Assembly (NCBI GenBank): GCA_026936335.1
Contig: JAPMXV010000046.1
Span: forward strand, 1-64,000
DNA: 64,000 nucleotides
DNA from: Mantamonas sphyraenae STR306
Taxonomy: Eukaryota > Protista > CRuMs
Direction: 5' to 3'
In this document: positions 1 to 53,037 of the stretch, one piece after another
Layout of the letters: the number at the start of each line of letters is the position of its first letter
Numbering within the stretch: position 1 is the stretch's first letter
Translations under genes and position numbers: made by a program
The notes under the pieces: model-generated
What the model was told of the DNA's origin: nothing
Database searches by the model: none
What the model saw: only the letters and a program-made list of their open reading frames with translations

Positions 1-169
1 CCTAACCCTAACCCTAACCCTAACCCTAACCCTAACCCTAACCCTAACCCTAACCCTAACCCTACCCTAACCCTAACCCTAACCCTAACCCTAACCCTAA
101 CCCTAACCCTAACCCTAACCCTAACCCTAACCCTAACCCTAACCCTAACCCTAACCCTAACCCTAACCC
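1..169. repeat. Telomeric repeat array (CCCTAA)n, i.e. TTAGGG on the minus strand; chromosome end
   Basis: About 28 tandem CCCTAA units from base 1, with one CCCTA variant near 60-64. Confidence 0.99.
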
Positions 170-1061
170 GACGCCGTGAGTTGTCTGCATTCCGCCTCAG
201 ACGACCCCGTGCGTATCGATTCGTAGGGACCCTGGAACGTGTCAAGATGTCGCTGCACTATTTGAGTGACATGGGCGTGGTTGATCCCGCAGATCTCCCC
301 ATTCGAAGCCGGCGCCAGTTTCACCAGCTCATATCTGAGCCCGTTCTGAGTGGTGTGCTTCAGATGGTGCTTGAGATGGCAGACTTACTTCCCATCAGAC
401 CCGGTGCGGTTCGCCCAGCCACCAGGCGCGTTGGAGCATCGTTTGGCGCGACAACAAACCGTCTGTCGGCGTGGGTCACACTTCTGAACGGAGTATTGAC
501 GCGGCCTGCAGGGTTTTCAATCAACGACTCTGTGCATTCACGTGCTGCTAGGTACTTGCCGGCGTTTATGCAATGGCTCCGCGCGATACAGGCGGCGAGG
601 GACCACGCAAACGTCGTCAGCCAGTCCGCTGCACCACCGTTGTCGGTCCGCTGGCAGGAAATTGGTTTGCTGTGGTTTCGAGTCCTTGCACAGGTGAACC
701 CTAACCCTCACCCACTGATCATGTATTCGTGGACGAAGCCGTGGACGAAGCCGTGGACGAAGCCGTGGACGAAGGAGGCATTGATTCAGCAACAACCAGC
801 ACGACAAGGTGCAGACCCGATTCTCCTGCCATCACCCTCCCATCTCCGACAACGCCCGTACAACACCAAGATCAACCAATTGACAGTGGGCGACGGTTGG
901 TGGAAAGAGCTCTGTATCTCTCGTTGCGCGAGCAAGACAACCAGGAGCAGGAGCTGTTTCGCCGGCAACGGAGTCGCCATGAGCTGGAAGATGACGGAGA
1001 GGAGGAAGATATGGAGCCTGCTCCGCGTCGGCAGCGCCTGACGTACGAAACAAGCGACTGA
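170..1061 (+). pseudogene. Telomere-abutting, probably 5'-truncated gene of unknown function
   Basis: The frame of ORF 181-1041 is open back into the telomere. The protein-like sequence switches near 700-730 into ORF 729-1061 (DEAV repeats, acidic tail, PRRQRL). Confidence 0.4.
729..773 (+). repeat. 12-bp tandem repeat GTGGACGAAGCC, ~3.8 copies
   Basis: Directly visible; encodes (VDEA)n or (WTKP)n depending on frame. Confidence 0.95.
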
Positions 1062-1110
1062 GGGGTGTCTGAGGCAATGCATGAAAGGAAGGGACGGACG
1101 GAGGTAAAGC

Positions 1111-1465
1111 CCCTTGCTCTCCCAGAGCCTCAATCACTGTTTGATCACATACATCCTGCGTCCACACACGTACAGGCTGCATATTACTGGCGTATGCACC
1201 CACTCTTGTTCACCCCAAGCCCCAGGTGGGTAGATTCCGTGTGTCTGTGGACGAGTGTCCCTTGCTCTCCCAGAGCCTCAATCACTGTTTGATCACATAC
1301 ATCCTGCGTCCACACACGTACAGGCTGCATATTACTGGCGTATGCACCCACTCTTGTTCACCCCAAGCGCCAGGTGGGTAGGATCCGTGTGTCTGTGGAC
1401 GAGTGTCCCTTGCTCTCCCCAGAGCCTCAATCACTGTTTGATCACATACATCCTGCGTCCACACA
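1111..1465. repeat. Subtelomeric 148-bp tandem repeat, ~2.4 copies
   Basis: CCCTTGCTCT unit starts at 1111, 1259 and 1407; the copies are near-identical. Confidence 0.95.
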
Positions 1466-2010
1466 GGCTCATCCCCACATGCACCTGTTCTTGAGGGGTG
1501 TCTGGGTGGGTGTTGAACCTCATGGTGAGGGTGGAATCTTTTGTAGGGTAAAGATCTCACTCACATGCGGTTACCAACCCTTTCACATGCACATGGTACA
1601 CAGCGAACAGCGTAAGACATGCAGTGGACGCGCATGGGAACCTAGAAGGTTGTTCGGTACCTACTCCCCCCCCCCCCCCCCGTTGTTTTGTGGTTTAGGG
1701 TGAACGTTTCCCAATTCTATGTTGTTGTGCGATTCTATCCTTCTTAATTTGATATGTGAATATGCGTTGAGTCCGGTCTATGTCATATGAGTCGTGCTTG
1801 TGTCTGCTGGCGGTGTGGCTGAGGTGGGTGCTGACATGGGGCAGTGGGCAATGGGTGGGAGTGGAAATGTCGCTGGTGAGTGGCCGTCGTCCTGCAACGC
1901 CGCGCAGTCAGCACTGCCCATCCGCTATCAACCAAAACATCTCCAACACCCACAACACCCTCCACCAGTCCAACACAATCCACATACACTCCAGTTCCAC
2001 CACCACCATC

Positions 2011-5000
2011 ATGGACAAGGACTACTCAAGCACTCCGAAGCAACAACACACACCCAACACCTACCCAGCGTGCGTTCTGCCTTTCACTCCGTTTTCTGAC
2101 TGCCCGCTTCTCCCGCTTCCTTGCCTCCTCCATGCTTCCGTCGCTTCCCTGCACTCCTTCCCTGCATCTCCACTTTCCCATCACCACCCCTGCTGTTTTC
2201 TCCGCTCTTATCGGATCCCCTCCCCCCTGTCACTGCCCTCCCCGTTGCCAGTTTCCCGGTCTGCCAATCTCCTCCGTTTTTCCCTCCCTGCTGGTTCCAG
2301 CCTCCCTTCACCCCGCTTCTGCCCTGACGGCATCCATTCCGCCTTCCGCTCACCGTTTCCACACCGCCCTCCCCCTCCCCGTCTCCCCCACAGCTACGCG
2401 TACATGGTCCCTCCCATGGCTGCCCAGCCGTTTCCGAACATGCTGCCCGCCTCTGGCGTACAAAACCCGTACCAGCACCCACAACCACCCATCATCTGGG
2501 TCCCTGTCAACACCCACTCCCAGCAACACCATGCATATACTCATCAGGGCCACCCATACTACGCCTACCCTCCTCAGCCGCCTCCTCAGCCCGGACAAAC
2601 CGCCCAGATGCACTTCGCTCAGACTTCGTTTCACCCTCCGCCTGCTCAACCCACCACAAACCACAACCGCGTTCCCAAACGCATCAGCCCTGCCTTTGTC
2701 GGCATCACACGGACCACATCCACCACCACGTCGTCCTCCACCCACCAGGCCACACGGCAGGCTGGAGACAGCGACGACGACGACGCGGACCATGACACAC
2801 AAACACATGACACCGGCGACGTGGAGGACCTTATGTTTCTGAACTTTGGCCATCGTGAACCACGGTCACCCTCCAGCAACACAGAGTGGATGACCAGCTC
2901 AGGGATGGAGGCGTACGAAGAAAGCGGCGAGGCAAACGACGCAACCCAGCAGCACGTGGACGACGAGTTGGAAACTCAGGGCGCACTCAGCTTCGCAGAC
3001 ACTGGTGATGCCATGGATGGGGAGTACTTGCCGCAAGACGACAGCGACGACGACACAGACGACATGGAGCAGGAGAGCACGGACGAATGGCAGCCGAGAC
3101 GCACAAGTAGAGGCCACGCACAACGACGAAGAGACCACATCGACCGTCGTACTGGTCCACAAAAGATGAAAGGCAGCGAACAGCGCAGGCTCATGGTCAC
3201 GGCTGGCGGTGTCACAGAGACAGGAACGTCGAGCACACGGGCAAGGAGGGCCAAGAACGGAGACAACGGGACAAAGAAGGGGTCAGGGGCGGAGAAGTCG
3301 AACAAGTTGCCAGAAGGTGTTGTGCGCAAAGGGTGGACAGCAGGACACAGTGACGAGCGCAGCCGCAGCAACAAGAAGGAGCACACGGCACTGCTGAACC
3401 ACATGCACACTCTGGCCAACGAGCATCCCATCAACGACATCCCCGACATCATGACCCTGCAGGCGCGTGTTGTGGTCTGCAATGGCACCCTGCGCACGCT
3501 GGTGCGACAGCTCCTGCTCGCTCTGGGCAACATTCCCCTCTCCCAGGGCGACATGGCACTCTGCCTCACCCTTCTCGGCCTTGACATGGATCAACAGACG
3601 TGCAGAAATGCCATCCACCACGCTGGTCTGGCCCTGGGTATCACAAAGGCTGGGTTGAAGGTGTGCTGGCTGGAGGAACCACACGACCACGGCGACCCCA
3701 ACTACGCCCTCCTCAACCTGCTCATGACAGAGATGGACACTCTCGGCGAATGGCCCCCTCCCACCACCTGGAAGGAGCACGAGCAGACCCAGCTGTGGCT
3801 GCAGAAAGCACGACGCCCTGCTGACAACGACAGCGACCCACACTGGACACAATGCGACTACGACCACCATCTTCCCACCACCAACAAGGTGGACAAGTGG
3901 AATCCCGTGTCTGTGCGCAGTGGCTGGAACAGTGGCCCTACCAGCGACGAGCGTGGCAGCTGCACGGCGCGGGAGTTCCAGACGCTGCTGGCACACATGA
4001 AGGCACGCGCAGCCAAGCACCCTCGCCATATCCACACACACGAGCACCATGCACTGCGTGAGCTGATCAACAACGCCAGCAAGGTGTCCCTTGTGCGACA
4101 CATCATTCTGGCGCTTGGCAACGTTGGCGTGCCGCCTGTCGACCTGGCCTTCTTTTTCCGCCTCATTAGACCACGCCTCACCTACAAGCAGGTTCAACAG
4201 GTCATCAGCAACACCCTCTCGCGCGGTGTCACCGCCCTCTCCCTCAAGATCGCCTGGTTGGACAACCCCCATCCCAGCGACGCCACACTGCACACCCTCC
4301 TCCACACCCTCATCGACCGCATCACACCCCACATCAACACCCGCCCTACCACCACTGACGCGGTCAACGCCCTCGACATCCCCAAGCTTGATCTGCCCGA
4401 GCCAACAGAGGAGGAGAAGATGGCCGTGGAGGATGAACTGCCAGATGGCGTTGTGCGCAGTGGCTGGACGCACTGGCGCAAGAGCGAGCGCAGCCACAGC
4501 AACAAGAAGGAGCACACGGCACTGCTGAACCACATGCACACTCTGGCCAATGAGCATCCCACCGACGACATCCCCGACCTCATGACCCTGCAGGCGCGTG
4601 TTGTGGTCTGCCATGGCAACCTGAACACGCTGGTCCGACAGATTCAGCTCGCTCTGGGCAACATTCCCCTCTCACAGGGAGACATGGCCTTCTGCCTCAC
4701 CCTTCTCGGCCGTGACGTGGATCAAAATGCGTGCTTCCTTGCCATCCGTGACGCTGGTCTGGCCACAGGTGTGACAGAGGCTGGGTTGAAGGTGTGCTGG
4801 CTGGAGGAGCCACACGACCACGGCGACCCCAACTACGCCCTCCTCAACCTGCTCATGACAGAGATGGACACTCTCGGCGAATGGCCCCCTCCCACCACCT
4901 GGAAGGAGCACAAGCAGACCCAGCTGTTGCTGCAGGAAGCACGACGCCCTGATGACAACGACAGCGACCCACACTGGACACAATGCGACTACGACCACCT

Positions 5001-5601
5001 CCTCACCACCACCAAGGTGGACAAGTGGCATCCTGAGTCTGTGCGCAGTGGTTGGATCAATGGTCTCAGCGACGAGCGTGGCAGCTGCACGGCGCGGGAG
5101 TTCCAGACGCTGCTGGCACACATGAAGGCACGTGCAGCCAAGTACCCTCGCCATCAGCATGCGCACGAGAACCATGCACTGCGTGAGCTGATCAACAACG
5201 GCCGCAAGCAGTCTCTGGTGCGACACATCATCCTGGCGCTGGGCAACGTTGGCGTGCCGCCTGTCGACCTGGCCTTCTTTGTTCGCCTCCTCAGACCACG
5301 CCTCACCTACAGGCAGGTGCAAAGTGCCATCACTGGCACCCTCATCCGAGGCGTCACCTCCCTCTCCCTCAAGATCGCCTGGCTCGACAACCCCAAACCC
5401 AGCGACGCCACACTGCACACCCTCCTGCACACCCTCATCGACCGCATCACACCCCACATCACCACCCGTCCCACCACCCCCGCACTCGTCAACGCCTACC
5501 CCATCCCCTCCTTCACCCTGCCCAAGCGCAAAGACCCTTCCTCCTCCTCCTCCTCCTCCTCCTCCTCCTCCTCCTCCTCGAAACGGCAACGCCTCGAATG
5601 A
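2011..5601 (+). CDS. Subtelomeric four-domain (A-B-A-B) repeat protein, copy 1; putative nuclear nucleic-acid-binding protein
   Basis: Exon 1 2011-2069, GT-AG intron 2070-2393, exon 2 2394-5601. P/Q/H-rich, acidic and basic N-terminus; 1131-nt internal duplication (starts 3307, 4438); C-terminal KRK...KRQRLE NLS-like end. Confidence 0.85.
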   Translation: MDKDYSSTPKQQHTPNTYPACVLPFTPFSDCPLLPLPCLLHASVASLHSFPASPLSHHHPCCFLRSYRIPSPLSLPSPLPVSRSANLLRFSLPAGSSLPSPRFCPDGIHSAFRSPFPHRPPPPRLPHSYAYMVPPMAAQPFPNMLPASGVQNPYQHPQPPIIWVPVNTHSQQHHAYTHQGHPYYAYPPQPPPQPGQTAQMHFAQTSFHPPPAQPTTNHNRVPKRISPAFVGITRTTSTTTSSSTHQATRQAGDSDDDDADHDTQTHDTGDVEDLMFLNFGHREPRSPSSNTEWMTSSGMEAYEESGEANDATQQHVDDELETQGALSFADTGDAMDGEYLPQDDSDDDTDDMEQESTDEWQPRRTSRGHAQRRRDHIDRRTGPQKMKGSEQRRLMVTAGGVTETGTSSTRARRAKNGDNGTKKGSGAEKSNKLPEGVVRKGWTAGHSDERSRSNKKEHTALLNHMHTLANEHPINDIPDIMTLQARVVVCNGTLRTLVRQLLLALGNIPLSQGDMALCLTLLGLDMDQQTCRNAIHHAGLALGITKAGLKVCWLEEPHDHGDPNYALLNLLMTEMDTLGEWPPPTTWKEHEQTQLWLQKARRPADNDSDPHWTQCDYDHHLPTTNKVDKWNPVSVRSGWNSGPTSDERGSCTAREFQTLLAHMKARAAKHPRHIHTHEHHALRELINNASKVSLVRHIILALGNVGVPPVDLAFFFRLIRPRLTYKQVQQVISNTLSRGVTALSLKIAWLDNPHPSDATLHTLLHTLIDRITPHINTRPTTTDAVNALDIPKLDLPEPTEEEKMAVEDELPDGVVRSGWTHWRKSERSHSNKKEHTALLNHMHTLANEHPTDDIPDLMTLQARVVVCHGNLNTLVRQIQLALGNIPLSQGDMAFCLTLLGRDVDQNACFLAIRDAGLATGVTEAGLKVCWLEEPHDHGDPNYALLNLLMTEMDTLGEWPPPTTWKEHKQTQLLLQEARRPDDNDSDPHWTQCDYDHLLTTTKVDKWHPESVRSGWINGLSDERGSCTAREFQTLLAHMKARAAKYPRHQHAHENHALRELINNGRKQSLVRHIILALGNVGVPPVDLAFFVRLLRPRLTYRQVQSAITGTLIRGVTSLSLKIAWLDNPKPSDATLHTLLHTLIDRITPHITTRPTTPALVNAYPIPSFTLPKRKDPSSSSSSSSSSSSSSKRQRLE

Positions 5602-5852
5602 ACCACCCTTTCATTCCCACACCCTCCCACTCACCCACCCTTCCCACCCTCTCTCCTCCACATACTCCTCCATCCCACCACACCCAAACATCGCCTCCCT
5701 CTCCTCCCCATTCATCACCAACGCCACCTCCATCGCCTCATCCACCTGTGCACCCCACCCATCTGCCTTCAACCAAAATATCACCAACACCCACAACATC
5801 CCTCCACCAGTCCAACACAATCCACATACACTCCAATACCACCGCCACCACC

Positions 5853-8800
5853 ATGGACAAGGACTACTCAAGCACTCCGAAGCAACAACACCCACCCAAC
5901 ACCTACCCAGCGTGCGTTCTGCCTTCCACTCCGTTTTCTGACTGCCCGCTTCTCCCGCTTCCTTGCCTCCTTCTTGCCTCTGTCGCTTCCCTGCACTCCT
6001 CCCCTGCATCTCCCCTTCCCCATCATCACCTCTGCTGTTTTCTCCGCTCTTTTCCGATCCCATCCCCCCTGTCACTGCCCTCCCCGTTGCCAGTTTCCCC
6101 GTCTGCCAATCTCTTCCGTTTTCCCTCTTTGCTCGTTCCAGCCTCCCTTCACCGCCGCTTCTGCCCTGACGGCGTCCATTGCACCTCCCGCTCACCGTTC
6201 CCACCCCGCCCATCCCCCTCCCGTCTCCCCACAGCTACGGGTACATGGTCCCTCCCATGGCTGCCCAGCCGTTTCCGAACATGCCACCCGGCCAAGTCGT
6301 CCAAACCCCGTACCAGCACCCACAATCACCCATCATCTGGGTCCCTGTCAACACCCATCCCCAGCGGCACCACGCGTATGCTCATCAGGGCCACCCATAC
6401 TACCCCTACCCTCCTCCGCCGCCTCCTCAGCCGCGACAAGCCGCCCAGATGCACTTCGCTCAGACTTCGTTTCACCCTCCGCCTGCTCAACCCACCACAA
6501 ACCACAACCGCGTTCCCAAACGCATCAGCCCTGCCTTTGTCGGCATCACACGGACCACATCTGCCACCACATCGTCGTCCTCCTCCCACCAGGCCACACG
6601 GCAGACTGGAGACAGTGACGACGACGACGCAGACCAGCACACACACACACATGACACCGGCGACGTGGAGGACCTGATGTTCCTGAACTTTGGCCACCGT
6701 GAACCACGGTCAATGTCCAGCAACTCAGAGTGGATGACCAGCTCAGGAATGGAGGCGTACGAAGAAGACGACGAGGCAAACGACGCAACCCAGCAGCACG
6801 TGGACGACGAGATCGAAACTCAGGGCACACTCAGCAATGCAGGCACTGGTGATGCCATGGGTGAGGAGTACATGCCGCAAGACGACAGCGACGACGACGC
6901 AGACGACATGGAGCAGGAGGACACGGACGAGTGGCAGCCGAGACGCACAAGAGGAGTCCGTACACGACGGCGCAGAGGCAACCCCAGCCGTCGTACTGGT
7001 CCACAGAAGATGGAAGGCAACGGACAGCGCAGGCTCAGGGTCACGGCTGACAGTGGCACGGAGACAGGAACGTCAAGCACACGGGCAAGGAGGGCCAAGA
7101 ACGGAGACACCGGCGCAGGGAAGGAAGCAGGCGTGGACAAGACGAATAAGTTGCCAGATGGTGTTGTGCGCAAAGGGTGGACATGGGGGTACAGTGACGA
7201 GCGCAGCCGCAGCAACAAGAAGGAGCACACGGCACTGCTGAAGCACATGCACACCCTGGCCAACGATCATCCCATCGACAATATCCCCGACATCATGGCA
7301 CTACAGGCGCGTGTTGTGGTCTGCCATGGCACTACGACCACGCTGGTCCGACAGATTCAGCTCGCTCTGGGCAACATTCCCCTCTCCCAGGGTGACATGG
7401 CCTTCTGCCTCTCCCTTCTCGGCCGTGACACGGATCAGAGCGCATGCAGCCTTGCCATTGACCACGCTGGTCTGGCCATGGGTGTGACAAAGGCTGGGTT
7501 GAAGGTGTGCTGGCTGGAGGAGCCACACGACCATGGCGACCCCAACTACGCCCTCCTCCACCTGCTAATGACAGAGATGGACACCCTTGGCGACAGGCCT
7601 CATCCCACCACCTGGAAGGAGCACAAACAGACCCAGCTGTGGCTGCAGAAAGCACGACGCCCTGCTGACAACGACAGCGACCCACACTGGACACAATGCG
7701 ACTACGACCACCACCTCACCACCACCAAGGTGGACAAGTGGCATCCCGAGCCTGTGCGCAGTGGCTGGAGCAAATCCCGGGGTGACGCGACCGACGAACG
7801 TGGTAGCTGCACGGCGCGGGAGTTCCAGACGCTGCTGGCACACATGAAGGCACGCGCAGCCAAGCACCCTCGCCACCAGCACACACACGAGCACCGAGCA
7901 CTGCGTGAGCTGATCAACAACGGCAGCAATCAGTCCCTGGTGCGACACATCATCCTGGCGCTGGGCAACGTTGGCGTGCCCCCTGTCGACCTGGCCTTCT
8001 TTGTCCGCCTCCTCAGGCCACGCCTCACCTACAAGCAGGTCGCACCTGCCATCAACCACACCCTCACCCGCGGCGTCACCTCCCTCTCCCTCAAGATCGC
8101 CTGGCTCGACAACCCCAAACCCAGCGACGCCACACTGCACACCCTCCTCCACACCCTCATCGACCGCATCACACCCCACATCACCACCCGTCCCACCACA
8201 GTCGATGCAGTCAACACCCTCGACATCACCGAGCTTGTTCTTCCCGAGCCCACAAAGGAGGAGAAGATGGCCGTGGAGGATGGACTGCCAGATGGCGTTG
8301 CGCGCAAAGGTTGGAAACTGGGGCCCAGTGACGATCACAGCCACAGCAACAAGAAGGAGCATACGGCACTGCTGAAGCACATGAACACCCTGGCCAATGA
8401 GCATCCTATCGACGACATCACCGACCTCATGACCCTGCAGGCGCGTGTTGTGGTCTGCCATGGCACCCTGACCACGCTGGTCCGACAGATTCAGCTCGCT
8501 CTGGGCAACATTCCCCTCTCCCAGGGCGACATGGCCTTCTGCCTCACCCTTCTCGGCCGTGACATGGATCAACATGCGTGCAGCGTTGCCATTCTCAACG
8601 CTGGTCTGGCCATGGGTGTGACAAAGGCTGGGTTGAAGGTGTGCTGGCTGGAGGAGCCACACGACCACGGCGACCCCAACTACGCCCTCCTCCACCTGCT
8701 CATGACAGAGATGGACCGTCTCGGCGACAGGCCCCATCCCACCACCTGGAAGGAGCACGAGCAGACCCACCTGTGGCTGCAGGAAGCACGACGCCCTGCT

Positions 8801-9442
8801 GACAACGACAGCGACCCACATTGGACAAAATGCGACTACGACCACCACCTCACCACCACCACGGTGGACAAGTGGCAATCTGAGTCTGCGCGCAGTGGCT
8901 GGAGCACACACCCGCACAACGACGAGCGTGGCAGCTGCACGGCGCGGGAGTTCCAGACGCTGCTGGCACACATGAAGGCACGCGCAGCCAAGCACCCTCG
9001 CCACCAGCACACACACGAGCACCGAGCACTGCGTGAGCTGATCAACAACGGCAGCAATCAGTCCCTGGTGCGACACATCATCCTGGCGCTGGGCAACGTT
9101 GGCGTGCCGCCTGTCGACCTGGCCTTCTTTGTCCGCCTCCTCAAACCACATCTCACCTGCAGGCAGGTGCAAGGTGCCATCAGCGCCACCCTCACTCGCG
9201 GCGTCACCTCCCTCTCCCTCAAGATCGCCTGGTTGGACAAACCCAAACCCAGCGACGCCACACTGCAAACTCTCCTCCACACCCTCATCGACCGCATCAC
9301 ACCCCACATCACCACACGCCCTACCACAGTCGCACTCGTCAACGCCTACCCCATCCCCTCCTTCACCCTGCCCAAGCGCAAAGACCATTCCTCCCCCTCC
9401 TCCTCCTCCTCCTCCTCCTCCAAACGCCAACGCCTAGAGTAA
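5853..9442 (+). CDS. Subtelomeric four-domain repeat protein, copy 2
   Basis: Exon 1 5853-5911, intron 5912-6234 (323 nt; splicing restores frame), exon 2 6235-9442. Internal duplication starts at 7151 and 8285. Confidence 0.85.
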
Positions 9443-9792
9443 CACTCACCCGTATCACACGCACCTTTGTCCTCAGTGGCGTGTGCGAAATTCCACTCAC
9501 CCTCACCTGCCCAACCAACGTTTCCAACAACAACTTCTCACCATTCACAGCAACACCAGTTCCCCCTTCCGCTCATACCATCCCTACTCCGTGTAAGTAC
9601 CCTCCCATGTTTCGCATCTCCGGTTCCGTCAACCGTCCTTTGCACACACTTGCCGCTCCATCCGCCCTCAAAGGTCCCTCGTTGCGCCCAACCGTCCACG
9701 CTATGCTGACCATCCTCCAACCTTCACGCACATGCATCATTACACGCCCATCCCAACCTACCCCCTATCGTGTTCCACTCAGTTTCGGTCCA

Positions 9793-12734
9793 ATGAACCT
9801 GCAAGGAGGCTACATTCCTCGGCATCATCTTTCCCCACCCGGCTACGCGTCTCCACAGAACTCCATGCAGTCCTTTGTGTGGGTTCCCGTTCTGTTACAC
9901 TATCCGAACCGCTTCCACACATACACCACTCCTCCCCCGCCGCCTCCGCCGCTGCGCCCAGCAACATAACCAGCCATTCCTCCGAACGCTTCAACGAGCC
10001 TGGAACGCTGTATGTGGACACCACACAACCCGCAGGGCGCTTCTACCGCTTCCACGACACCGATTGGATGACTCAGGATGACGTGCTCCGGTATGTCGAG
10101 GCGAGCGACGAGGCCTGGGCTCAGCCCGTCTCGCAAGACCACACAGCCACGACCACAACGTCAACAACCACTATAGATGGGGATTCCATACCTGGGGACA
10201 ATAGCGATGACGACACAGACGACATGGAGCAGGAGAACATGGATGAACAGTCGCTGCCCAAACGAAGCAGTCGCCGCACACGACAGAGGGGCCGCAGCGG
10301 ATGTCGCTCTGGGACACAAAGCAGCACATGGACTGGAAATCACGGGCACAGGGTCACGACTGGCAGTGGCACGGAGACAGGAACGTCGAGCACACGGGCA
10401 AGGGGGGCCAAGAACGGAGACAACGGTGCACGGAAGAAAGCAGTCGTGGACAAGACGAACAAGTTGCCGGATGGAGTTGTGCGCAAAGGGTGGAAAGTGG
10501 GACCCAGTGACGAGCGCAGCCACAGAAACAAGAAGGAGCGTACGGCACTACTGAACCACATGCACACCCTGGCCAACGAGCATCCCATCGACAACATCCC
10601 CGACCTCGTGACCCTGCAGGCGCGTGTTGTCGTCTGCCATGGCACCACGACCACGCTGGTCCGACAGATTCTGCTCGCTCTGGGCAACATTCCCCTCTCC
10701 CAGGGCGACATGGCCCTCTGCCTCACCCTTCTCGGCCTTGAAGTGGATCGACGTGGGTGCAGCCTTGCCATCCTCAACGCTGGTCTGGCCATGGGTGTGA
10801 CAAAGGCTGGGCTGAAGGTGTGCTGGCTGGAGGAGCCACACGACCACGGCGACCCCAACTACGCCCTCCTCCACCTGCTCATGACAGAGATGGACACTCT
10901 CGTCGACAGGCCCCATCCCACCACCTGGAAGGAGCACAAGCAGACCCAGCTGTTGCTGCAGGAAGCACGACGCCCTGCTGACAACAACAGCGACCCACAC
11001 TGGACACAATGCGACTACGACCACCATCTCACCACCACCAAGGTGGACAAGTGGCATCCCGAGTCTGAAAGCAGTGGCTGGAGCAACACCGCAGACGAGC
11101 GTGGCAGCTGCACGGCGCGGGAGTTCCAATCGTTGCTGGCACACATGAAGGCACGCGCAGCCAAGCACCCTCTCCATCAGCACACACACGAGCACCATGC
11201 ACTGCGTGAGCTGATCAACACTGGCAACAAGATGTCCCTGGTGCGACACATCATCCTGGCGCTGGGCAACGTTGGCGTGCCCCCTGTCGACCTGGCCTTC
11301 TTTGTCCGCCTCCTCAGGCCACACCTCACCTACAAGCAGGTACAAGGTGCCATCAAGAACACCCTCACCCGCGGCGTCACCTCCCTCTCCCTTAAGATCG
11401 CCTGGCTCGACAACCCCCAACCCAGCGACGCCACACTGCACACCCTCCTCCACACCCTCATCGACCGCATCACACCCCACTTCACCACCCGTCCCACCAC
11501 CGTTGACGCAGTCAACACCCTCGACATCCCCGAGCTCGTTCTGCCCGAGCCCACAGAGGAGGAGATGGTGGCCGTGGAGAATGGACTGCCAGATGGCGTT
11601 GTGCGCAGTGGCTGGACGTCATGGCGCAAGAGCGAGCGCAGCCGCAGCAACCTGAAGGAGCACACGGCACTGCTGAACCACATGCACACTCTGGCCAACG
11701 AGCATCGCATCGACGATATCCCTGACCTCATGACCCTGCAGGCGCGTGTTCTGGTCTGCCATGGCACACTGAACACGCTGGTCCGACAGATTCAGCTCGC
11801 TCTGGGCAATATTCCCCTCTCCCAGGGTGACATGGCCTTCTGCCTCACCCTTCTCGGCCGTGACATGGATCAACATGCGTGCATCCGTGCCATCGACAAC
11901 GCTGGTTTGACCATGGGTGTGACAAAAGCTGGGTTGAAGGTGTGCTGGCTGGATGAGCCACATGACTACGGCGACCCCAACTACGCCCTCCTCCACCTGC
12001 TCATGACAGAAATGGACACTCTTGGCAACAGGCCCCATCCCAGCACCTGGAAGGAGCACGAGCAGACCCGGCTGTGGCTGCAGAAGGCACGACGCCCCTC
12101 CAACAACGACAGCGACCCACACTGGACACAATGCGACTACGACCACCTCCTCACCACCACCGAGGTGGACAAGTGGCACCCTGAGTCAGTACGCAGTGGC
12201 TGGGCAACGCACAGTCCCAACGACGAGCGTGGCAGCTGCACGGCGCGGGAGTTCCAAACGTTGCTGGCACACATGAAGACACGTGCAGCCAAGTACCTTC
12301 GCCATCAGCACACATACGAACACCATGCACTACGTGATCTCATCAACAACGGCAGCAAGCTGTCCCTGGTGCGACACATCATCCTGGCGCTTGGCAACGT
12401 TGGCGTCCCGCCTGTCGACCTGGCCTTCTTTGTCCGCCTCCTCAGGCCACAGCTCACCTACCAGCAGGTACAACCTGCCATCAGCGTCACTCTCACCCGC
12501 GGCGTCACCTCCCTTTCCCTCAAGATCGCCTGGCTCGACAACCCCCAACCCAGCGACGCCACACTGCACAGCCTCCTCCACACCCTCATCGACCGCATCA
12601 CACCGCACATCAACACTCGCCCAACCACCATCGCACTCGTCAACGCCCACCCCATCCCCTCCTTCACCCTCCCCAAGCGCAAAGACCTTTCCTCCTCCTC
12701 CTCCTCCTCCTCCAAACGCCAACGCCTCGAATGA
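9793..12734 (+). CDS. Subtelomeric four-domain repeat protein, copy 3; divergent N-terminus, start uncertain
   Basis: ORF 9732-12734 has the same A-B-A-B core (starts 10464, 11586). The homologous 'WVPV..PPPP' N-terminal part lies in another frame (ORF 9481-9969), implying a frame break near 9930-9965. Confidence 0.75.
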
Positions 12735-12930
12735 ACGCATTCATTCCCACTCCCTCCCACTCACCCACCTCTCCCCACCCACCCAATCACCCTCTCCATC
12801 ACCTCATCTGGCAGTGTCACCCACCCTGCGCCCTCCCGCCTCCACACGTCATCCATCCCTCCACACGCAAACATCACCTTCCTCTCTCTCTTCCCCGTTC
12901 ATCACCAACGCCACCTCCATCGCCCCATCC
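12731..12930 (+). repeat. 3' flank of copy 3, homologous to the 3' flank of copy 1 (5598-5745)
   Basis: Shared TTCATTCCCAC..CCTCCCACTCACCCACC and TTCATCACCAACGCCACCTCCATCGCC blocks. Confidence 0.85.
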
Positions 12931-12939
12931 ACCACCCTA

Positions 12940-13222: not shown

Positions 13223-13360
13223 GCAGAAGGAGCAGCAGCACTAGCGCAGGCACTGAATGAGAACAGCAGCTTGCAGGCACTGGACCTCAGCACCAACCTG
13301 ATCGCGGCAGATTGAGCAGCAGCGCTGAAAAAGGCTGTGGCAATCGCTCTTGCTGGACGT
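13223..13360 (+). pseudogene. RNI-like leucine-rich-repeat gene fragment with in-frame stop
   Basis: Translates AEGAAALAQALNENSSLQALDLSTNLIAAD*AAALKKAV. The TGA at 13313-13315 sits where Gly is expected. Confidence 0.7.
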
Positions 13361-13464
13361 GTGAGGGCGTCTACAGTGACATTTTGCAGTTGCTGGTGGA
13401 GAAAAACAAGAAGTCGACGCTGCGCCCGGGCGCCGCCATTGAAAAAAAAAAACCCCGACTCAAC

Positions 13465-16400
13465 ATGAGAAGAGGATTCGTCACAGCCGTGCTAGCTGTG
13501 ATGCTCGTGGTTGCTGCCGCAACCAACATCGATCTGGACGATACGTTTGGAAAGACCAACCTGTTTGACAACGACAAGGTGCTCACGCAGCAGCAGCTGC
13601 GTGAAGTGTTCAAGACACCCGAGGTCATCGCTGACCGAGAGGAGGTCGTGCACATGAAGGAGGAGGAGGTGTCTGAGGACGACTTCTTCCAGGAGGCGCG
13701 TGACCCGTCGATGGACCTCGAGGGCAAGACCGCCATTACGCCGACGGGCGAGCTCACGGATGCAGAGAAATCTGCAATTGGCGAGCCCGACGAGCACGCG
13801 ACCGAGTTTGGCAAGGGCTACCATGTCAAGACTTACCTGCGTGGCGACGTCAAGGTGCACCCGAAGTTTGTGGCCATCGCTGATGAGCACCACAAGGAGT
13901 TCGTCATGGACAAGGCCCCGACCAACGACATCAAGGACGACGATCCCATCAACCTGATGCAGAAGCATGCCGGCCGACTGTTTGAGCGCATGCAAGATCA
14001 GGTCAAGGACGCCGCTGTCGGTGAGACCGTGCACATGGAGCACGAGGACCTCGTGGACGACCAGGACGTGAACCCGCACCTCATTTCTGGAAAAGGGTGG
14101 GACGACGATACCCAGAACAACCCGAACAACTTCCAGCGCGAGGGCAGCGAAGAGGGTAAGTGCTCTGCCAGCCCGTTTTCCCCCTCTGTGACGGCGACGC
14201 GCGTGTGTTTGCGTTTTTTCCGCGCCCCTGCAATTTTTCCCTCCCAACCTCTGGCCGCTTGAACCGCGCCACCGCGGCGCTGGATGACGCCAGCCTCCAT
14301 CGAATGGGTCTGTGCAGTGCTCCCAAGCATGTGTGTGCCTACTGTCATGGTTTGCATGTGTCTGCATGATCCCCTATGCCTGCTTCTCCGGGAAACCTTC
14401 CAATTCCGCCGACGTGCTTCGACAATCTTCTCAGCATGTCGTGGCCCCGTTTCAATCTGAGGGATGCTCGTGTGCCGTTGATTCCGGCTGGCAAGTCTTT
14501 AGCACGCCTTCCGACGTGCATTGGACACGGCCGCGAGCTGACTGGCCCTCTGTATGACTGCCTGGTGTCCAAAAACGACACGGCGCGATTCTCCGTTGGC
14601 CTCCCTTTTTTTCTCCAGCTTGTTCGCGGCCCCGTTTCAATCTGAGCGATGCTCGTGTGCCCTCGAGACCGGCTGGCAAGTCTTGAGCACGCCTTCCGGT
14701 GTGCATTGGACACGGCCGCGAGCTGGCTGGCCCTCTGTATGCCTGCCTAGTGTCCAAAACACGTCCCGGTGCGATTCTCCATCCAAGCGTTTTCTTTGTC
14801 GACGCTCCCCTTCCGTCCTTCCTTCCCAACGGCTAACACCCGATGGTCCTCACTGAACGTGTGTTGATACTGCGCAGCTGGAGCCGGTGCCTTCCTGGCG
14901 TCGCGCCACCTCGTCGAGAAGTACAACCTGGAGGCGGGTTCTTACTTTGCCATCCACACGGGTCTGTACAAGGTGCTGCACGTCAAGACCGACACGCTGG
15001 ACGCCATGGTGCGTCTGCACTGTCGACGTGCGGGTCTGGCCGAGGTGATTGAGAACGGTGAGGTGCGCACTGTGGTGCAGGGCACGCCGTCGATGGTGCA
15101 GGATTCCGAGACCGGCGAGGTCGAGGATCTGCGCACCCATGCCACCATGGCCAAGGACAAGGAGCTTGTGCAGCAGATGTACACACGCCTGCGTGCCACG
15201 CACCAGGCCCACCTGGACGAGGAGCTCATCGAGGAGCGCCTGGCGACTCTGGACAAGAAGCTGTGGAAGGAGGTTTCCAACGGCATGCCCAAGTCCATGA
15301 TGACCGCCGAGATGATCCCTCAGCTGCGCGACGCCACCGAGGAGCTCAGCAAGGACATGAAGGACAGCGTGCGCCAACGCTTTGTCACGGCTGCCCACGA
15401 GCACGTCATGCAGGCGGCTCAGGAGCAGGAGTACGACAACATCCCCGACTCTGACGTCGAGGACGAGTACGCCGACGACGCGCCTGTCGCCGACACTCCC
15501 GAGACCGAGACCGATGAGTTTGCACAGGACAACATGGAGGACGTCGAGGACGAAGACGAAGACTCGGAGCAGCTGCCCCAAGACTCGCTGGAGGACGACG
15601 TCGAAGACGATGACGACGAGGAGATGGAGGACGTGCACGACACCGAGCGCAACCGCTGGGGCCGTGTGGGTCGATTCTTCCGCCGTGTGGGCCGCGGTAT
15701 CAAGCGTGGCTTCCGTCGCATTGGCCGCGGCATCAAGCGCGGCTTCCGCCGTGTCGGACGTGCCCTGAAGCGCGGCTGGCGCGCTGTCAAGCGCTTTGGC
15801 CGTTCCATCGCGCGCGCGGTCAAGCGTTTTGCCGCCAAGGTGTGGCGTGCGTTCAAGAAGATTGCTCGCGGCTTTGTTTCGTTCCTGAAGAAGGTAGGCC
15901 GTGTGCTCGCCAAGATTGGCAAGGCCATCGTGGCTGTCGTCAAGAAGCTGGGCAAGATTGTTGTCTTCCTGGCCAAGCTGCTCACCGGCACCATTGATGT
16001 GGACTACACCAAGGGTGTGCGCGCTGGCAAGCGCATCGGCGAGAAGGACCTGTTCAAGAAGCGCAAGGGCAACCTTGCGGTGCTGTTGCGCCTCGTGCAC
16101 GCCACTGCCACGTTCCACCCGCGCTTCGAGTTTGCGCTCAACGTGAAGCACTTCAAGCTGAAGAAGTTCAAGACGGTGCTTGCGGGTGACCTGAAGCTGG
16201 GCATGGAGCTGCTCATCCAGCTCTCGCTGCAGTACCAGAAGACCAAGGACAAGCAGCTGCTGAGCTACCGTGTGGCCAGCATCAAGTTCATGGCCGGTCC
16301 CGTGCCGGTGTGGATCAGCGTGCGCTTCATCCTGAAGGCCGGTGTGACCGTGAACATCACCGCCGGTATCGAGACCCGCTTCGGCGGCAGCGTGGCCACT

Positions 16401-19400
16401 GGCATTTCGCTGGGTCTGGTGTACGACGGCCGCTGGCGTGGTATCTTTAAGCGCTACTTCAAGAAGGAGCTCAAGGGCCCCAAGGGCCTGAAGCCGTGCG
16501 GTGGCATCACTGTGGAGGTGTTTATGACGCCCAAGCTTGCGTTCCTGCTGTACGACGTGGCTGGTCCCACGTTCGCTCTGGAGCCGTACCTGCAGCTGAA
16601 CTTCCACCCGAAGGGTGTGCAGCACTGTGTGCAGGTCGATGCCGACGAGAAGAAGAAGGACAACAAGAAGAAGGGTACCCGCGTGCGCGATGGCACCCCG
16701 ACTCTGATGCACTTTGACGAGGCCGGCAACGGCGTTGTCCTGGATGCCGACAGCAACGCCGACAAGGCTATCAACATCAAGTGGGAGCTGCGTCTGGGTC
16801 TGCGTGGTAAGGTTGGTGTCCTTGTGCAGCTGCTGGGCAAGGAGCTCGTCAGCTACGAGAAGGATGTCTTTGACAAGAGCAAGGTCGTCGCCACGGGCTT
16901 CTTCAAGATTGGCCGCGACGTGCAAGACGACGAGGAGGTCAGCGAGGACGAGGACCTGCTGGAGACGCAGGCTCTGGTCGCCGACTGGGACGAGCAGGAC
17001 AGCCTGCTCAACGTCGCCAACAACCAAGAGAGCGACAGCGAGAGCGAAGAGGAGCTCGAGGACTCCGACTCGGAGTCCGACTCGGCCTCTGACATTGAGG
17101 ACGATGACGAGTCTGCAGGTGAGTACGACGAGCTGAGCAGTGTCGACTCTCCTGTCGCCTCTGCCTCAGAGAACGTGGCCGACAAGGACATGTTCATCCG
17201 CAGGATCCGCCGCGCCGTCCGCCGTGTGTCGAGGAGAATCCGTCGCGCCGTGCGTCGTGTGCGTCGCCTCCGCGTCCGCCGTGTGGTTCGCCGCGCTCGC
17301 CGCTTTGTGCGCCGTGCCGTCCGCCGTGTGCGTCGCGTCCGCGTGCGCCGTGTGGTTCGCCGCGCTCGCCGCTTTGTGCGCCGTGCTGTCCGCCGTGTGC
17401 GTCGCGTCCGCGTCCGCCGTGTGGTTCGCCGCGCTCGCCGCTTTGTGCGTCGCGCCGTCCGCCGTGTGCGTCGCGTCCGCGTCCGCCGTGTGGTTCGCCG
17501 CGCTCGCCGCTTTGTGCGCCGCGCTGTCCGCCGCGTGCGTCGCGTCCGCGTCCGCCGTGTGGTTCGCCGCGCTCGCCGCTTTGTGCGCCGTGCTGTCCGC
17601 CGTGTGCGTCGCCGTGTGCGTCGCCGCACCACTCGCCGTCGCCGCAGCAGCCACAAGAAGTTGTCGTCCGCCGAGAAGCGCAAGGGTCGCCGTGAGATCC
17701 AGAAGCTGCTCCGCAGGAAGGAGGCCAGGAAGATCCGTGCTACTGCGGACAAGGCCCGTCAGGCTCGTGCCGATGCCAAGAAGACCAGCGCCGACCTGAA
17801 GAAGGTGACGCACATCAGCGCCTCCAAGCGCCGTGAGGCCGAAACTGCCTGCCGTAACACCATGAAGACGTCCCAGAAGGCTCTCAACAAGGAGTTTGAG
17901 CTCGACGCAAAGATCAAGCAGCTCGCCAGGAAGTATTCTCTGCGCGCCTCGGACTTTATCCGCAAGCGCAAGGCTGTTGTCCGCCGCCGCCGTGTGGTTC
18001 ACCGTCGCCGCCCGATCCGTCGTGTGCGCCGTGCCATCCGCCGTGTCGTCCGCCGTCGTCGCCCGGTCCGTCGTGTGCGCCGTGCTATCCGCCGTGTTGT
18101 GCGTCGTGTCGTCCGTCGTCGTCGCTTCGTCCGCCGTCGTCGCCCGATCCGTCGTGTGCGCCGTGCTATCCGCCGTGTTGTGCGTCGTGTCCGTCGCCGC
18201 ACCTGCTTCAGGAACATCAGGCGCTGCTTCCGCATCCGCAACCGCCGCCTCTGTAGGAACGTGCGTGTGCGCACTGCCTGCCGCCGTGGCGTGCGCCGTG
18301 TCGTCCGTCGCCGTCGCCCGATCCGTCGTGTGGGCCGTGCTATCCGCCGTGCCATCCGCCGTGTCGTCCGTCGCCGTCGCCCGGTCCGTCGTGTGGGCCG
18401 TGCTATCCGCCGTGCCATCCGCCGTGTCGTCCGTCGTCGTCGCCCGGTCCGTCGTGTGCGCCGTGCTATCCGCCGTGTTGTGCGTCGTGTCCGTCGCCGC
18501 ACCTGCTTCAGGAACATCAGGCGCTGCTTCCGCATCCGCAACCGCCGCCTCTGTAGGAACGTGCGTGTGCGCACTGCCTGCCGCCGTGGCGTGCGCCGTG
18601 TCGTCCGCCGCCGTCGCCCGATCCGTCGTGTGGGCCGTGCTATCCGCCGTGCCATCCGCCGTGTCGTCCGTCGTCGTCGCCCGATCCGCCGCCGTGGTGG
18701 TTTCTTCCGCAAGATCCGCAAGGCAGGCCGCCGCGCAGGCCGTCGTGTCCGCAAGGCGATCCGCCGCTTCCGTGGCCGCCGCCGACGCCGCCGTGGTGGT
18801 TTCTTCCGCAAGATCCGCAAGGCTGGCCGCCGCTTCCGTGGCCGCCGCCGACGCCGCCGTGGTGGTTTCTTCCGCAAGATCCGCAAGGCTGGCCGCCGTG
18901 TCCGCAAGGCGATCCGCCGCTTCCGTGGCCGCCGCCGACGCCGCCGTGGTGGTTTCTTCCGCAAGATCCGCAAGGCAGGCCGCCGCGCTGGCCGTCGTGT
19001 CCGCAAGGCGATCCGCCGCTTCCGTGGCCGCCGCCGACGCCGCCGTGGTGGTCGCAAGACCCGTCGCCGCCGCTTCTCGGTAGGTCGCACCCTCAAGGCC
19101 ATCGGTCGCATGGTGAAGCGCCTGCACCGCAAGCGCTTCGCCGCTCTGCACCGCGCCATCAAGGCTGTCAGTGCTCAGGAGCGCGCTCGCATCAGCAAGA
19201 TCCGTAAGCGCCTGCGCCGCCGCGCTAGCCAGCTCAAGCGCAAGATGTGCCTCAGGACCACCCGCAAGTGCCGCATGGTCCGCTTTGGCCGTGGCAAGCG
19301 CCGCATCTGCTCCATCAAGAAGCAGCGTGTGCCCTGCAAGTCCCTCCGCCGCCGTGCACGCCGCTTCCGTCGTCTGGCCCGCCGTGGCCGTCGCCACCCG

Positions 19401-19724
19401 CGCCGCTTCCTGCGTCGTATCCGCAAGGTGATCCGCCGCAAGACCTTCAGGCGCAACTTTGCCCGCACCGCCAGGAGACTCAAGCGCGCCCTGCGCTTCC
19501 GTCGCCGCCGCCGTCGCCACCCGCGCCGTGCTGCCAAGAAGGTGCGTCGCATCCTCCGTCGCTCTGTCGGCCGCCGCGCTCTGCGCCGCAAGGTCGTCCT
19601 GAGCCGTCGTGGCCGTTGCCCGGCGATCCTCCGCAAGACCCGCGCTAAGCTCGTCGCTCTGCGTCGTCTTGTTGCACGCCTGCGTGCATCCCTGCGCAAG
19701 CGCAACGCTCGCCGCCGCTTCTAA
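13465..19724 (+). CDS. Large secreted precursor (~1850 aa): signal peptide, acidic regions, cationic amphipathic helix, beta-rich domain, ~840-aa Arg-rich repetitive C-terminus
   Basis: Exon 1 13465-14155 (MRRGFVTAVLAVMLVVAAA), intron GTAAGT...GCAG 14156-14877, exon 2 14878-19724 in frame with ORF 14973-19724. Strong C/G third-position bias. Confidence 0.88.
14443..14780. repeat. Two diverged direct copies (~150 bp, ~185-bp period) of a hairpin-rich element inside the intron
   Basis: GGCCCCGTTTCAATCTGAG...GCGATTCTCC at ~14443-14595 and ~14628-14780. Confidence 0.9.
17245..17615 (+). repeat. 69-bp coding tandem repeat x5 (RRAVRRVRRVRVRRVVRRARRFV)
   Basis: GTGGTTCGCCGCGCTCGC recurs at 17283, 17352, 17421, 17490 and 17559. 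Confidence 0.95.
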
Positions 19725-37808: not shown

Positions 37809-39215
37809 TCAATCGCCGTCGATGCTCACGCAGTACGTAATGGCCTTGAGCAGCTTGTCACGCATCACCTCCTCTGTCGAGTACTCGGGCAAGTCCAGCG
37901 TAAAATAGCACGTGTGTGCCTCTGGCAAACTTTCGTCCGCTCCGTACAAGTTGCTGATCTCCATTTTGTCGCTCCACGATGCGTCTGCGGGTGGCAACGA
38001 AGTGCGCCCCCATACAAAGCGCAGGTACTGCTGGCGTTGTTCAGCGGTGAAACTGGCCAACACACGCCAAAAACGCTGAATCACGGGCGAGTTGGCACTG
38101 TATCCACTGTACCGCGTGTGTTGTTTCAACAGCGCCAGATCCACGTCTGCTTTGCCCACCACCAGACTGCACAGATCGCGCCACGTCAGCAAAGAGAAGA
38201 ATGTGATCGGCACAATCATCGCAATGCCCCTGCGCACAGCCTGAACCTGTGCGTTGAATTCGTTCAAGCGCACCTGCACGCTTCGCTCAACAAACTCCTC
38301 CCTGTTGGCCAAGGTCACACGTCGGGTCGCTCCATGAGGCACCAGCTCCTGCACGCTGCCGTCACTCAGAGTCACTGCAAACACCTCTGTGATCATCTCT
38401 CCAAACTCCTCCTCGCTCACGCTGCTGGCGTCCACCTCCAAGATGCCCCGGTGGCACTGCACCAGCATCTTGTCGTACGTCTCCAGGTCTCGTGCTTCCA
38501 GCTGTTCGTCCACAAGCAACTTGTACATCACAGGCGCCAGGCTGATTTCAATCGGGTTTTGCGTCCTCAGGCAAATGCCCAGCAGGACTCCTACCGCCTG
38601 AAACATCTGCAGATGCTCTTCAGACCGCAGGCTCGGGTTAAACACAAATGCCTCCTGGTGCAGGCCCTGTTTGAACTGTTGGTTGGGCGACGGGATCAGA
38701 AGGTTCACGTGTTCGCTCTGCAGCTCCTTCACCAGCATTGTCAGCGACTCACGGTACGGACCTCCTTCGTCAATACTGTGCTCTCCAACAAAGTCCACCT
38801 CCCACGCGCGCCTCGATCCGCGCCATTTGCGCATTTTGCTCCCGTTGCTCAATAACGACTTTGTCAGCTGCCCGATCAGCGATGCGCGCAGCGTCTCCTC
38901 GCTCGCCTCCTTTTCCTGTGCCTCATTGGCTGCAATTCTGTTCATCACCACGCTCGGCCGTCCTCCGGACCCCTTGGTTGCCTTCAATGCAGTCTTCCAC
39001 AGTTTCAGCTTCAGCTGCGGAAACAACATCCCGCGCAGTTGTTCCAGCGAGTGTGCCATGCTTCCTTCCGATGTGATCTTGGAAAAGTCCACAAACTGCA
39101 CCACGCTCTCCACGCTCTGATTCAGCACTTGCAGAATCGTCAGGCGTTCCTGCACAAACTCGTGCCCATTCACCCGTCCCACAGGCGTCCCTCTGTCGCA
39201 TCCACCGCCGTCGAG

Positions 39216-39271
<56 letters not shown>

Positions 39272-51200: not shown

Positions 51201-53037
51201 GCGTAGCGGTAGCTTGCGTACAAGTCAGAATCTCGCGTTTCGTCGACTTTGCCCAAGTACTTGGCGGAGAAGGAGCTGTTGAAGTAGTCGTCAGCTTGGT
51301 ACTGGATACCCTCCTGCGAGAGGTAGGTCAGACCCCCGCAGTTGATGGCCAGGCTGATGGAGCCCGTGAGGTTGTGCTTGGAGTCACGGGGCTTTGGCAT
51401 TCCGAGGAGAGGGACCACGCGCGTGAGTTCCATCTCCTTGTCCGTATCAAAGGCGCGCACGAAAAAGCCGTCCTCTTCGGTGCCAGTGACCTCGTAGAGG
51501 AAGCGGCCGTGCGATGTGACGGGCTTGCACTTCTTCGCTGGAGCCTCGTCCTCAACCAGCTGCTTCGGCTTGGAGACCGCCTGCAGATTCTGGCGGTTGA
51601 TGCTGACGAAGCCTGCATGGGTGCCAAAGAACAGAGTTGCGCCCACAAAGCAAAGCCAACCGTCGCCAGGTTGTCCAACCTCGTCCTGGAAGGTGGCGTT
51701 GTGGCTGTACACTTTGCCTGCTGTGGTCTGGGTGCCCGGGTAGCCCGTGCCAACTTTGAGGAGTCCAAACTTGGCGGCATGAACATACAGATGACGCCCA
51801 TCGCATGCGATGGCCACCTTTTGGTCCTTGAGACTCTGTTCGGCGCCGACGGCAAAGTCGACGGGGAATGATTGGACGAGGAGAGACGAGCCAGCAAGGG
51901 AGAGCAGGCGCAGGTTGGCTGGCATGGCAGCCAGGCGAGCCACTGCGGGGGACAGGTCCAAGGCTTTGTCGTTGAGAGGCTCACGAGCGAGGAGCTGGAC
52001 AAGGCGTATGAGGTTGGTCATGGAGCGGCGGGCGACGGCGAGGTCGAGGAGCAAGACAAGAAGGGTCTGGACGTACTGTGTCCATTGGGAGGCCGAGACA
52101 GAGATGTCTGCGTCCGGTATGTTGGCTGTGATTGTCAATTGTGCAAGGAGGGCGTCAAAAAGCTGGTCGAGGGCCGTGGCGATGAACGGCGGGAGACCGA
52201 GCTTGGAGGTTGTGATCAACGAGAGGGTGTCTTGGACGACGTCGAGAACCTGCTGCATGCTGGCCGTGTTCTCCACGCCCAGAGTGCCGAGCATGATCAT
52301 GGCCACGCGGATGGAGGCCTTTGCGAGTTCAGCCATGGGGTCGACTGTGCCCTGTGCGCTTGCGGCCTGTTTGTTTGCCTCCTGGCGCTTGTGCGTTTGA
52401 GCCAAGGCCAGCGATCGATAGTGGGCGACATGCACTCTGCGCACTGTATCCAGACGTTTGCGAAGCGAAGTCACCGCAGCTTCAGCCATCTTTGGTGGGA
52501 GGGCGAGGGAGTCAGGTCAGGTCAGAATTCCAATTGTGTGTGCATCTGGCTCCTACGTGTGCCCGGCTGGGTTGGTGCGTGCCTGCAACCACGAAGAACC
52601 TACAGCAGCGCGCGATGTGTTGGAAAGCAAGGATGTTCGCAGGATCTGCAGTTCGTCAACATCGTCTATGGCCAAGGCGTCGAGGAGCCGCTGCTTCGGC
52701 TCAGCCGCAATTTGCTTGTCAACGTTGTCTGCGGCCTGTTGCCAAGCTGACACGTTGTGAAAAGACACGAATGAGGCGTGAGTATGGTGTGTGTGTGTGT
52801 GTGAGTGTAGGTGTGTGGAGGGTGGGCATAGACTAGACACGTACTGTTTGGGCTCTCAAAAGTCGGGTCTAGCGCAGGCGCACTTGAGTCAACGTGGCCA
52901 GCCAGTTCCCAAGCGCCCAACGGCTGGTTGATCCACACACTGTCGCTTTGCTGTGTGGCCTTGACGTCCGACGCAAGAAAGTCCACAACTTGACCTGGAC
53001 GATCAAAGTACTCCGTTTGGATCGGCGTCAACGACAT
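37809..53037 (-). CDS. Giant HECT E3 ubiquitin ligase (~5000 aa) with malectin, LamG-like, SPRY and Zn-finger-like modules
   Basis: Two short 5' exons from ATG 53037, main ORF 52489-39170, frame break near 39185, HECT ORF 39182-37809 (F.GE.S.D.GGPYRE; LPEAHTCYFTLDLPEYS). Confidence 0.92.
39217..39278. repeat. (GATGAC)n coding microsatellite encoding poly-Ser on the minus strand
   Basis: Directly visible. Confidence 0.95.

Follow-up and report, generated by a model that had tools for sequence, protein, structure and literature searches.

The subtelomeric stretch examined here (the window; 64,000 nucleotides, positions 1 to 64,000 of the forward strand of contig JAPMXV010000046.1, assembly GCA_026936335.1) from Mantamonas sphyraenae STR306 carries three tandem members of a large gene family, the products of which are built from alternating modules, A and B, each with a probable helix-turn-helix (HTH) core in which one helix face is hypervariable. 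The family comprises at least 142 gene starts genome-wide, counted by the start of exon 1, and at least 349 A-B units, counted via a 20-mer of module B; neither count gave a single match in the reversed control. We place at roughly one in two the probability that these are host genes for modular, sequence-selective DNA readers which act in the nucleus and are diversifying in a conflict.

An earlier note, made from the window alone, had described three tandem paralogues between positions 2011 and 12734, each with two units that split into homologous halves, giving 12 domains, and this architecture holds. The unit period is approximately 376 amino acid residues, the halves measure 180-195 residues, and A and B share 36% identity over 139 residues (E 4e-20). 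The motifs and helix sequences quoted there are present in the alignment. The family of three is correct for the window, while genome-wide it is larger, as the above counts reveal. The comparisons that follow are based upon 30 fetched loci, from which 60 A and 66 B domains (126) were aligned and which include 59 complete units.

Variation between modules is not evenly spread. The patches have a mean column entropy of 2.1-2.2 bits, versus about 0.35 bits for the scaffold, and the entropy profiles of A and B correlate (Spearman 0.52, p 3e-11), in keeping with the proposal that the patches occupy equivalent positions in both halves. The scaffold is conserved in DNA as had been claimed, yet "near-identical" was too strong, since copies differ by 5-8%. 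In the third helix the variable columns are A98, 101, 102, 105, and 106 and B102, 105, 106, 109, and 110, which are spaced i, i+3, i+4, i+7, i+8; the periodicity of variability is about 95 degrees, and its moment lies opposite the hydrophobic moment (permutation p 0.0008 for A and 0.008 for B). Judged from the hydrophobic moment, the variable residues would lie on the solvent face of helix 3, which is congruent with the exposed variable face that had been predicted. Polar positions in the other helices are conserved (mean entropy 0-0.8 versus 1.7-2.2). Lys, Arg, His, Asn, Gln, Ser, and Thr make up 67% (A) and 75% (B) of the residues on the variable face, and acidic residues only 4-8%. Patch 1 of B varies in length; patch 1 of A, also listed as variable, contains one truly hypervariable column, the remainder being largely a dimorphism between first and later units (GxSD versus WRKS).

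The scaffold is under purifying selection, with a ratio of nonsynonymous to synonymous diversity (pN/pS) of 0.36 in A and 0.43 in B. In the patches, which were chosen after the data had been seen, the nonsynonymous rate (dN) is 3.6 times (A) and 5.1 times (B) the synonymous rate (dS) of the scaffold, and synonymous diversity is higher in patch codons too (pS 0.35 versus 0.13-0.16). A tree-free test counts the codons whose first and second positions both exceed a heterozygosity of 0.5; it reveals seven among 293, where 0.08 would be expected if all codons were as unconstrained as 4-fold sites, and eight neutral recombining simulations produced none. The first and second positions of the patches average a heterozygosity of 0.44-0.53, against a mean of 0.11 at 4-fold sites, and the 4-fold sites near the patches are barely raised. 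Column A102 has T as the third base in 53 of the 60 sequences, whereas all four bases occur at each of its first two positions; taken together, A102 and the equivalent B106 show four letters at the second base, three or four at the first, and mostly T at the third. Diversifying selection on the seven hypervariable codons is well supported by these counts, and it appears to be restricted to the putative reading face of the module helix, as in KRAB zinc-finger proteins (KRAB-ZFPs) and PRDM9.

The earlier note had proposed a site-wise dN/dS analysis. Its tree-based version, a codon mixture test with a branch scale that was not optimised and which is confounded by recombination, gave a value for twice the log-likelihood difference of 64 for A and 188 for B, and the neutral recombining simulations gave 28-119. 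Since these span the value for A, the test is invalid for this module and was set aside; it is valid at most for B, where 11 strong sites compare with at most 4 in simulations. A minimum-allele test, deliberately conservative and biased against nonsynonymous changes, yielded an omega-like value of 0.65.

Pairwise distances between copies measured in one segment are essentially uncorrelated with those in another, and the combination of patches is distinct in all 59 complete units, from which it follows that segments have been shuffled between copies. Most loci contain two units and some three; the longest arrays seen are the copies on contig C29 (80732-101917), which have open frames of 2172 and 3224 residues, or roughly 5 and 8 units. 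At two loci (L006 and L027) the A modules of adjacent units inside one gene are identical, which points to recent unequal crossing-over that adds units.

The M. sphyraenae assembly is reported to measure 25.06 Mb in 78 contigs at a GC content of 59%, with TTAGGG telomeres capping 59 contigs at both ends and 14 at one end (PMC10492846). Among the matches listed, most chromosome ends have a family member as their first gene, with a start codon that typically lies 400-550 bp from the contig start. Listed matches are directed inward (plus strand at left ends, minus strand at right ends). One of them (C29, 80732, plus strand) is found approximately 20 kb inside the right end. The frame is broken upstream of the modules in three of the 30 loci (L009, L020, and L027), which may represent pseudogenes or misassembled repeats. 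Purifying selection together with the mostly open frames lends indirect support to an expressed host gene. A match to the telomerase RNA-binding domain is present on contig C3 (8289-8639, minus strand); it is situated approximately 8 kb from the chromosome end, directly behind family copies.

The HTH-like core that had been proposed is supported by two AlphaFold models, the matches of which are dominated by HTH proteins with modest scores. The A-B model has a predicted local distance difference test score (pLDDT) of 47 overall and displays a helix-helix-helix-hairpin order in both halves, the hairpin after helix 3 having a pLDDT of 38-64. With VIA-align, its top matches are winged-helix or HTH proteins, the best being the winged-helix (WH) domain of Hop2 (Z 9.1; root mean square deviation (rmsd) 1.7 A over 60 residues), followed by others including Fur, MecI, ArgR, and histone H5; Foldseek returned MarR proteins with probabilities up to 0.97 and a best E of 0.047. 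The model of a single B domain, computed from a mixed A+B alignment, reaches a pLDDT of 76 (core 86-90), with helices at residues 65-75, 83-93, and 99-111 at pLDDT 86-89. Its matches are again mostly winged-helix proteins (Z up to 5.4), although Foldseek found none in the PDB or viral libraries, and an Atlas shape search gave nothing clear (TM score 0.39 at best by query). The modelled arrangement is likely to represent the tri-helical HTH core that has been described (PMC4653904). The variable helix is the third of the modelled core, while patch 2 falls at the start of its first helix and patch 1 lies in a segment that neither model resolves. In DNA-binding HTH proteins the third helix is the recognition helix.

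Pfam contained no match for the modules or for the N-terminal region, and no enzyme domain was detected with it. Nor were homologues found by a word search against 5.8 billion proteins using one unit and exon 2 of gene 2 as queries, which covers only proteins of 0.55-1.75 times the query length; by a mixed A+B profile run with HMMER on 1.84 billion representatives; by a PDB sequence search; in the metagenome and viral contigs searched; or by features in the ESM Atlas. At the sensitivity of the searches used, the family is an orphan with no relatives outside the M. sphyraenae genome. No account of it was found in the literature searched, and it is not mentioned in the passages of the genome paper that were searched (PMC10492846). 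The repeat masking applied in that paper ahead of gene prediction may have hidden it.

No match to a known transposon or enzyme family was found, and several specific identities were rejected. A relaxase (MobA/VirD2), suggested by an Atlas feature score of 0.83 that is below the usable level and missing for the single domain, would have the HUH fold with a five-stranded sheet, whereas the models are mostly helical. The telomeric retroelements HeT-A and TART likewise occur as head-to-tail copies at chromosome ends and are directed away from the telomere; the Mantamonas genes, however, contain an intron, have ragged 3'-ends without poly(A), give no reverse transcriptase or Gag match, and coexist with telomerase; a telomeric retrotransposon is accordingly rejected. 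A DNA transposon is rejected on the lack of a catalytic domain and of a fixed 3' boundary, which ranges among copies from 0 to about 300 bp past the stop. Heterozygosity in the patches differs little among consensus bases (0.38-0.47), without the adenine bias of a diversity-generating retroelement. Membership of the KRAB-ZFPs or PRDM9 is contradicted by the absence of any such Pfam match and of C2H2 spacing, and membership of the TAL effectors (TALEs) by a repeat period of about 376 residues, rather than 33-35 residues with a repeat-variable diresidue. We infer from the ragged 3'-ends without poly(A) and the presence of telomerase that end-to-end exchange fits better than transposition.

In the explanation proposed, each module of approximately 150 residues would have an HTH core, probably winged, with five variable residues exposed to solvent on its third helix. 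The contact may be tuned by two further variable spots close by, one where the first HTH helix begins and the other in an N-terminal loop. A constant, presumably disordered N-terminus (P/Q-rich and acidic), expected to recruit an effector, would be followed by a string of two or more A-B pairs. Through exchange between chromosome ends the frame would be homogenised, the patches shuffled, and the number of units altered, and selection would keep many versions of the helix face, most plausibly tracking changing foreign or mobile DNA. A nuclear location would agree with the C-terminal tail, for which a resemblance to a nuclear localisation signal (NLS) had been noted: both of its basic clusters are kept in 30 of 30 loci, while the poly-Ser spacer varies in length. 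Two basic clusters around a spacer are the pattern of a bipartite NLS.

Several observations weigh against this explanation. Leu, Ile, Phe, Pro, and Asp also occur on the variable face, which is 21% hydrophobic in A; module A is net acidic (isoelectric point (pI) 6.1), module B having a pI of 10.1. No sequence link to any HTH family was found in Pfam, PDB sequences, or the 1.84 billion proteins, and the structural scores lie within the range of unrelated helical arrangements, the Foldseek E never reaching 0.001 or less. The wing, a hairpin in the A-B model, is replaced in the single-domain model by a helix (pLDDT 62-75). Many winged helices bind protein or RNA, and for module A the tree-based test had to be set aside.

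Because module A is acidic and tolerates hydrophobic residues and proline, protein recognition stays a real rival, if an unlikely one. The helical module would then serve as a scaffold for binding, with the three patches as the variable interface of diversifying receptors for viral, parasite, or transposon proteins in the nucleus, comparable to NLR, WD40, and LRR repertoires, an interface which hydrophobic, acidic, and proline residues would suit as well. The better of the two models lacks a wing, and ESCRT-II is among the matches of the A-B model; the winged helices of ESCRT-II and cullins bind proteins. Against such receptors speak the identity of the variable helix, which is the DNA-reading one in HTH proteins, the rarity of acidic residues on its variable face, and the strongly basic character of module B.

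The first-gene position at most ends, the inward orientation, and the very high copy number would also suit a selfish gene in a telomere conflict, the products of which recognise their own chromosome-end or recombination-site DNA and which spreads and diversifies via meiotic drive or target-site erosion in the manner of PRDM9. We regard this as improbable: a constant telomeric repeat would not select many specificities, telomerase is present and the telomeres are plain TTAGGG, Pfam detects no enzyme domain, and the intron and ragged 3'-ends argue against a retroelement or a fixed-end transposon. Lower still is the chance of an array with variable specificity for RNA sequence or structure, composed of winged helices similar to LOTUS or Z-alpha. 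Tandem winged helices are known in RNA-binding proteins, and a Z-DNA-binding domain and SelB are among the A-B model matches, but Pfam gives no match, and the Asn and Tyr of helix 3 that are fixed in Z-alpha are not fixed here. Least probable is the absence of adaptive diversification, with the patches as relaxed surface sites or local mutation hotspots in an amplified subtelomeric repeat; the raised patch pS, the conservative allele count, and the reach of the neutral simulations for A are in its favor, yet it is largely refuted by the tree-free count and its simulations. Relaxed sites cannot exceed neutral diversity, the third base of A102 is near-constant beside two freely varying positions, the nearby 4-fold sites are barely raised, and the patches show no base bias of the kind left by a diversity-generating retroelement.

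If the modules do read DNA, their closest counterparts would be the vertebrate KRAB-ZFPs, which also number hundreds of paralogues, combine a constant N-terminal part with tandem modules of variable number, and are under positive selection at the DNA-contacting residues of the reading helix (PMC6719617). Unlike these, the Mantamonas family lacks C2H2 fingers and a KRAB domain and is dispersed over chromosome ends; its modules are larger (approximately 150-190 residues), HTH-like, and arranged as alternating A-B pairs. In the zinc-finger array of PRDM9 the repeat frame likewise evolves in concert while the contact positions are hypervariable, yet PRDM9 is encoded by one gene and has SET and KRAB domains, whereas Mantamonas has more than 140 genes and no catalytic domain. 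The likeness to TALEs drawn in the earlier note is a loose one: both have a constant frame with few hypervariable residues per repeat, but TALEs are secreted bacterial effectors with 34-residue repeats that read one base each, whereas the Mantamonas proteins have 4 (up to roughly 16) large domains, each with five variable helix positions and no evident per-base code. The three-helix core superposes on that of winged-helix and HTH proteins (ArgR, Fur, MarR, and the Hop2 WH domain) with Z 5-9 and rmsd 1.7-3.8 A over 60-75 residues; the modules share no sequence similarity with these, have a C-terminal helix and two additional helices at the N-terminus, and occur four or more to a chain. DUX4/D4Z4 and Candida TLO are nuclear-regulator genes repeated beside telomeres, although with different domains (homeodomain and Med2, respectively), and neither is known to have a hypervariable recognition face.

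The features of the window are collected in Table 1. The start at 2011 belongs to a short first exon of gene 1 (59 nt, as in gene 2), which is followed by a GT-AG intron that is 79% pyrimidine. Compared with gene 1, the intron of gene 2 differs by 1-nt insertions or deletions and exon 2 by a single 3-nt insertion or deletion; the length of this intron is not a multiple of three, and only splicing puts exon 1 in frame. The 5' region of gene 3 is of another type, present in six copies in the genome that are 95-97% alike. Past position 9950, gene 3 lacks one base relative to its paralogue L010, which leaves the first approximately 73 residues of the open reading frame (ORF) from 9732 off-frame; this 5' frameshift is either a lesion or an assembly error. 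The first 100 bp of the upstream segment 1697-2010 match positions ~200-330 of several other contigs, and the single-copy segment which precedes it may be a captured or healed end.

Table 1. Features of the telomere-proximal gene array in the window
Feature	Position	Strand	Remarks
Telomeric (CCCTAA)n tract	1-169	.	Left end of the contig (C46)
Single-copy segment, telomere to the family's usual first base	170-1696	+	Absent at other ends
Orphan ORF within this segment	181-1041		One copy; no Pfam match
148-bp tandem repeat within this segment	1111-1465		2.4 copies
Telomere-adjacent upstream DNA common to copies	1697-2010	+	Putative promoter and 5' untranslated region
Gene 1 exon 1	2011-2069	+	59 nt
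Gene 1 intron	2070-2393	+	324 nt; GT-AG; pyrimidine-rich
Gene 1 N-terminal low-complexity region	2394-3306	+	P/Q/Y-rich, acidic, and basic, in that order; no Pfam match
Gene 1 modules	3307-5508	+	A1 3307-3888; B1 3889-4437 (with linker); A2 4438-5016; B2 5017-5508
Gene 1 C-terminal tail and stop	5509-5601	+	Two basic clusters flanking a poly-Ser spacer; bipartite-NLS-like
Gene 2 exon 1	5853-5911	+	
Gene 2 intron	5912-6234	+	323 nt; GT-AG; pyrimidine-rich
Gene 2 exon 2	6235-9442	+	N-terminal region; A1 7151-7729; B1 7730-8284; A2 8285-8863; B2 8864-9358; NLS-like tail
Variable third helix, example from gene 2 A1	7436-7465	+	Variable columns 98, 101, 102, 105, 106
Gene 3 alternative 5' region	9445-10200	+	Likely ATG 9793
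Gene 3 modules, NLS-like tail, and stop	10464-12734	+	A1 10464-11042; B1 11043-11585; A2 11586-12164; B2 12165-12659
Variable third helix, example from gene 3 B2	12459-12497	+	Model residues 99-111; pLDDT about 86-89
3' flank common to copies	12735-12933	+	Ragged end; no poly(A); no fixed terminus

Downstream of the array lies a large orphan gene region (13312-19724) with no Pfam match, which includes two ORFs. One (13312-14262) has a stretch resembling a signal peptide; the other, of 1583 residues, contains acidic blocks and ends in a repetitive, very Arg-rich tail. Between these two ORFs, at 14428-14780, lies a duplication of 185 bp with copies about 88% alike, and an ORF of 4439 residues is found on the minus strand at 39170-52489.

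The most far-reaching interpretation is a tentative one, and we consider it doubtful: a naturally re-programmable tandem-HTH system of DNA recognition, independent of zinc fingers, TALE, and PPR proteins, in a lineage near the root of Amorphea, in which ~700 end-located modules would be diversified by selection and recombined into new specificities for genome defence, with a readable code that relates five helix positions to bases. Should DNA be what the modules read, the strategy of the KRAB-ZFPs would have been invented independently on an HTH frame in a deep-branching eukaryote; the ~700 natural variants of one frame would suffice to learn the recognition code, and would perhaps be the source of a new programmable DNA-binding scaffold. 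Even with a protein ligand, an orphan first-gene family under focal diversifying selection marks a strong conflict.

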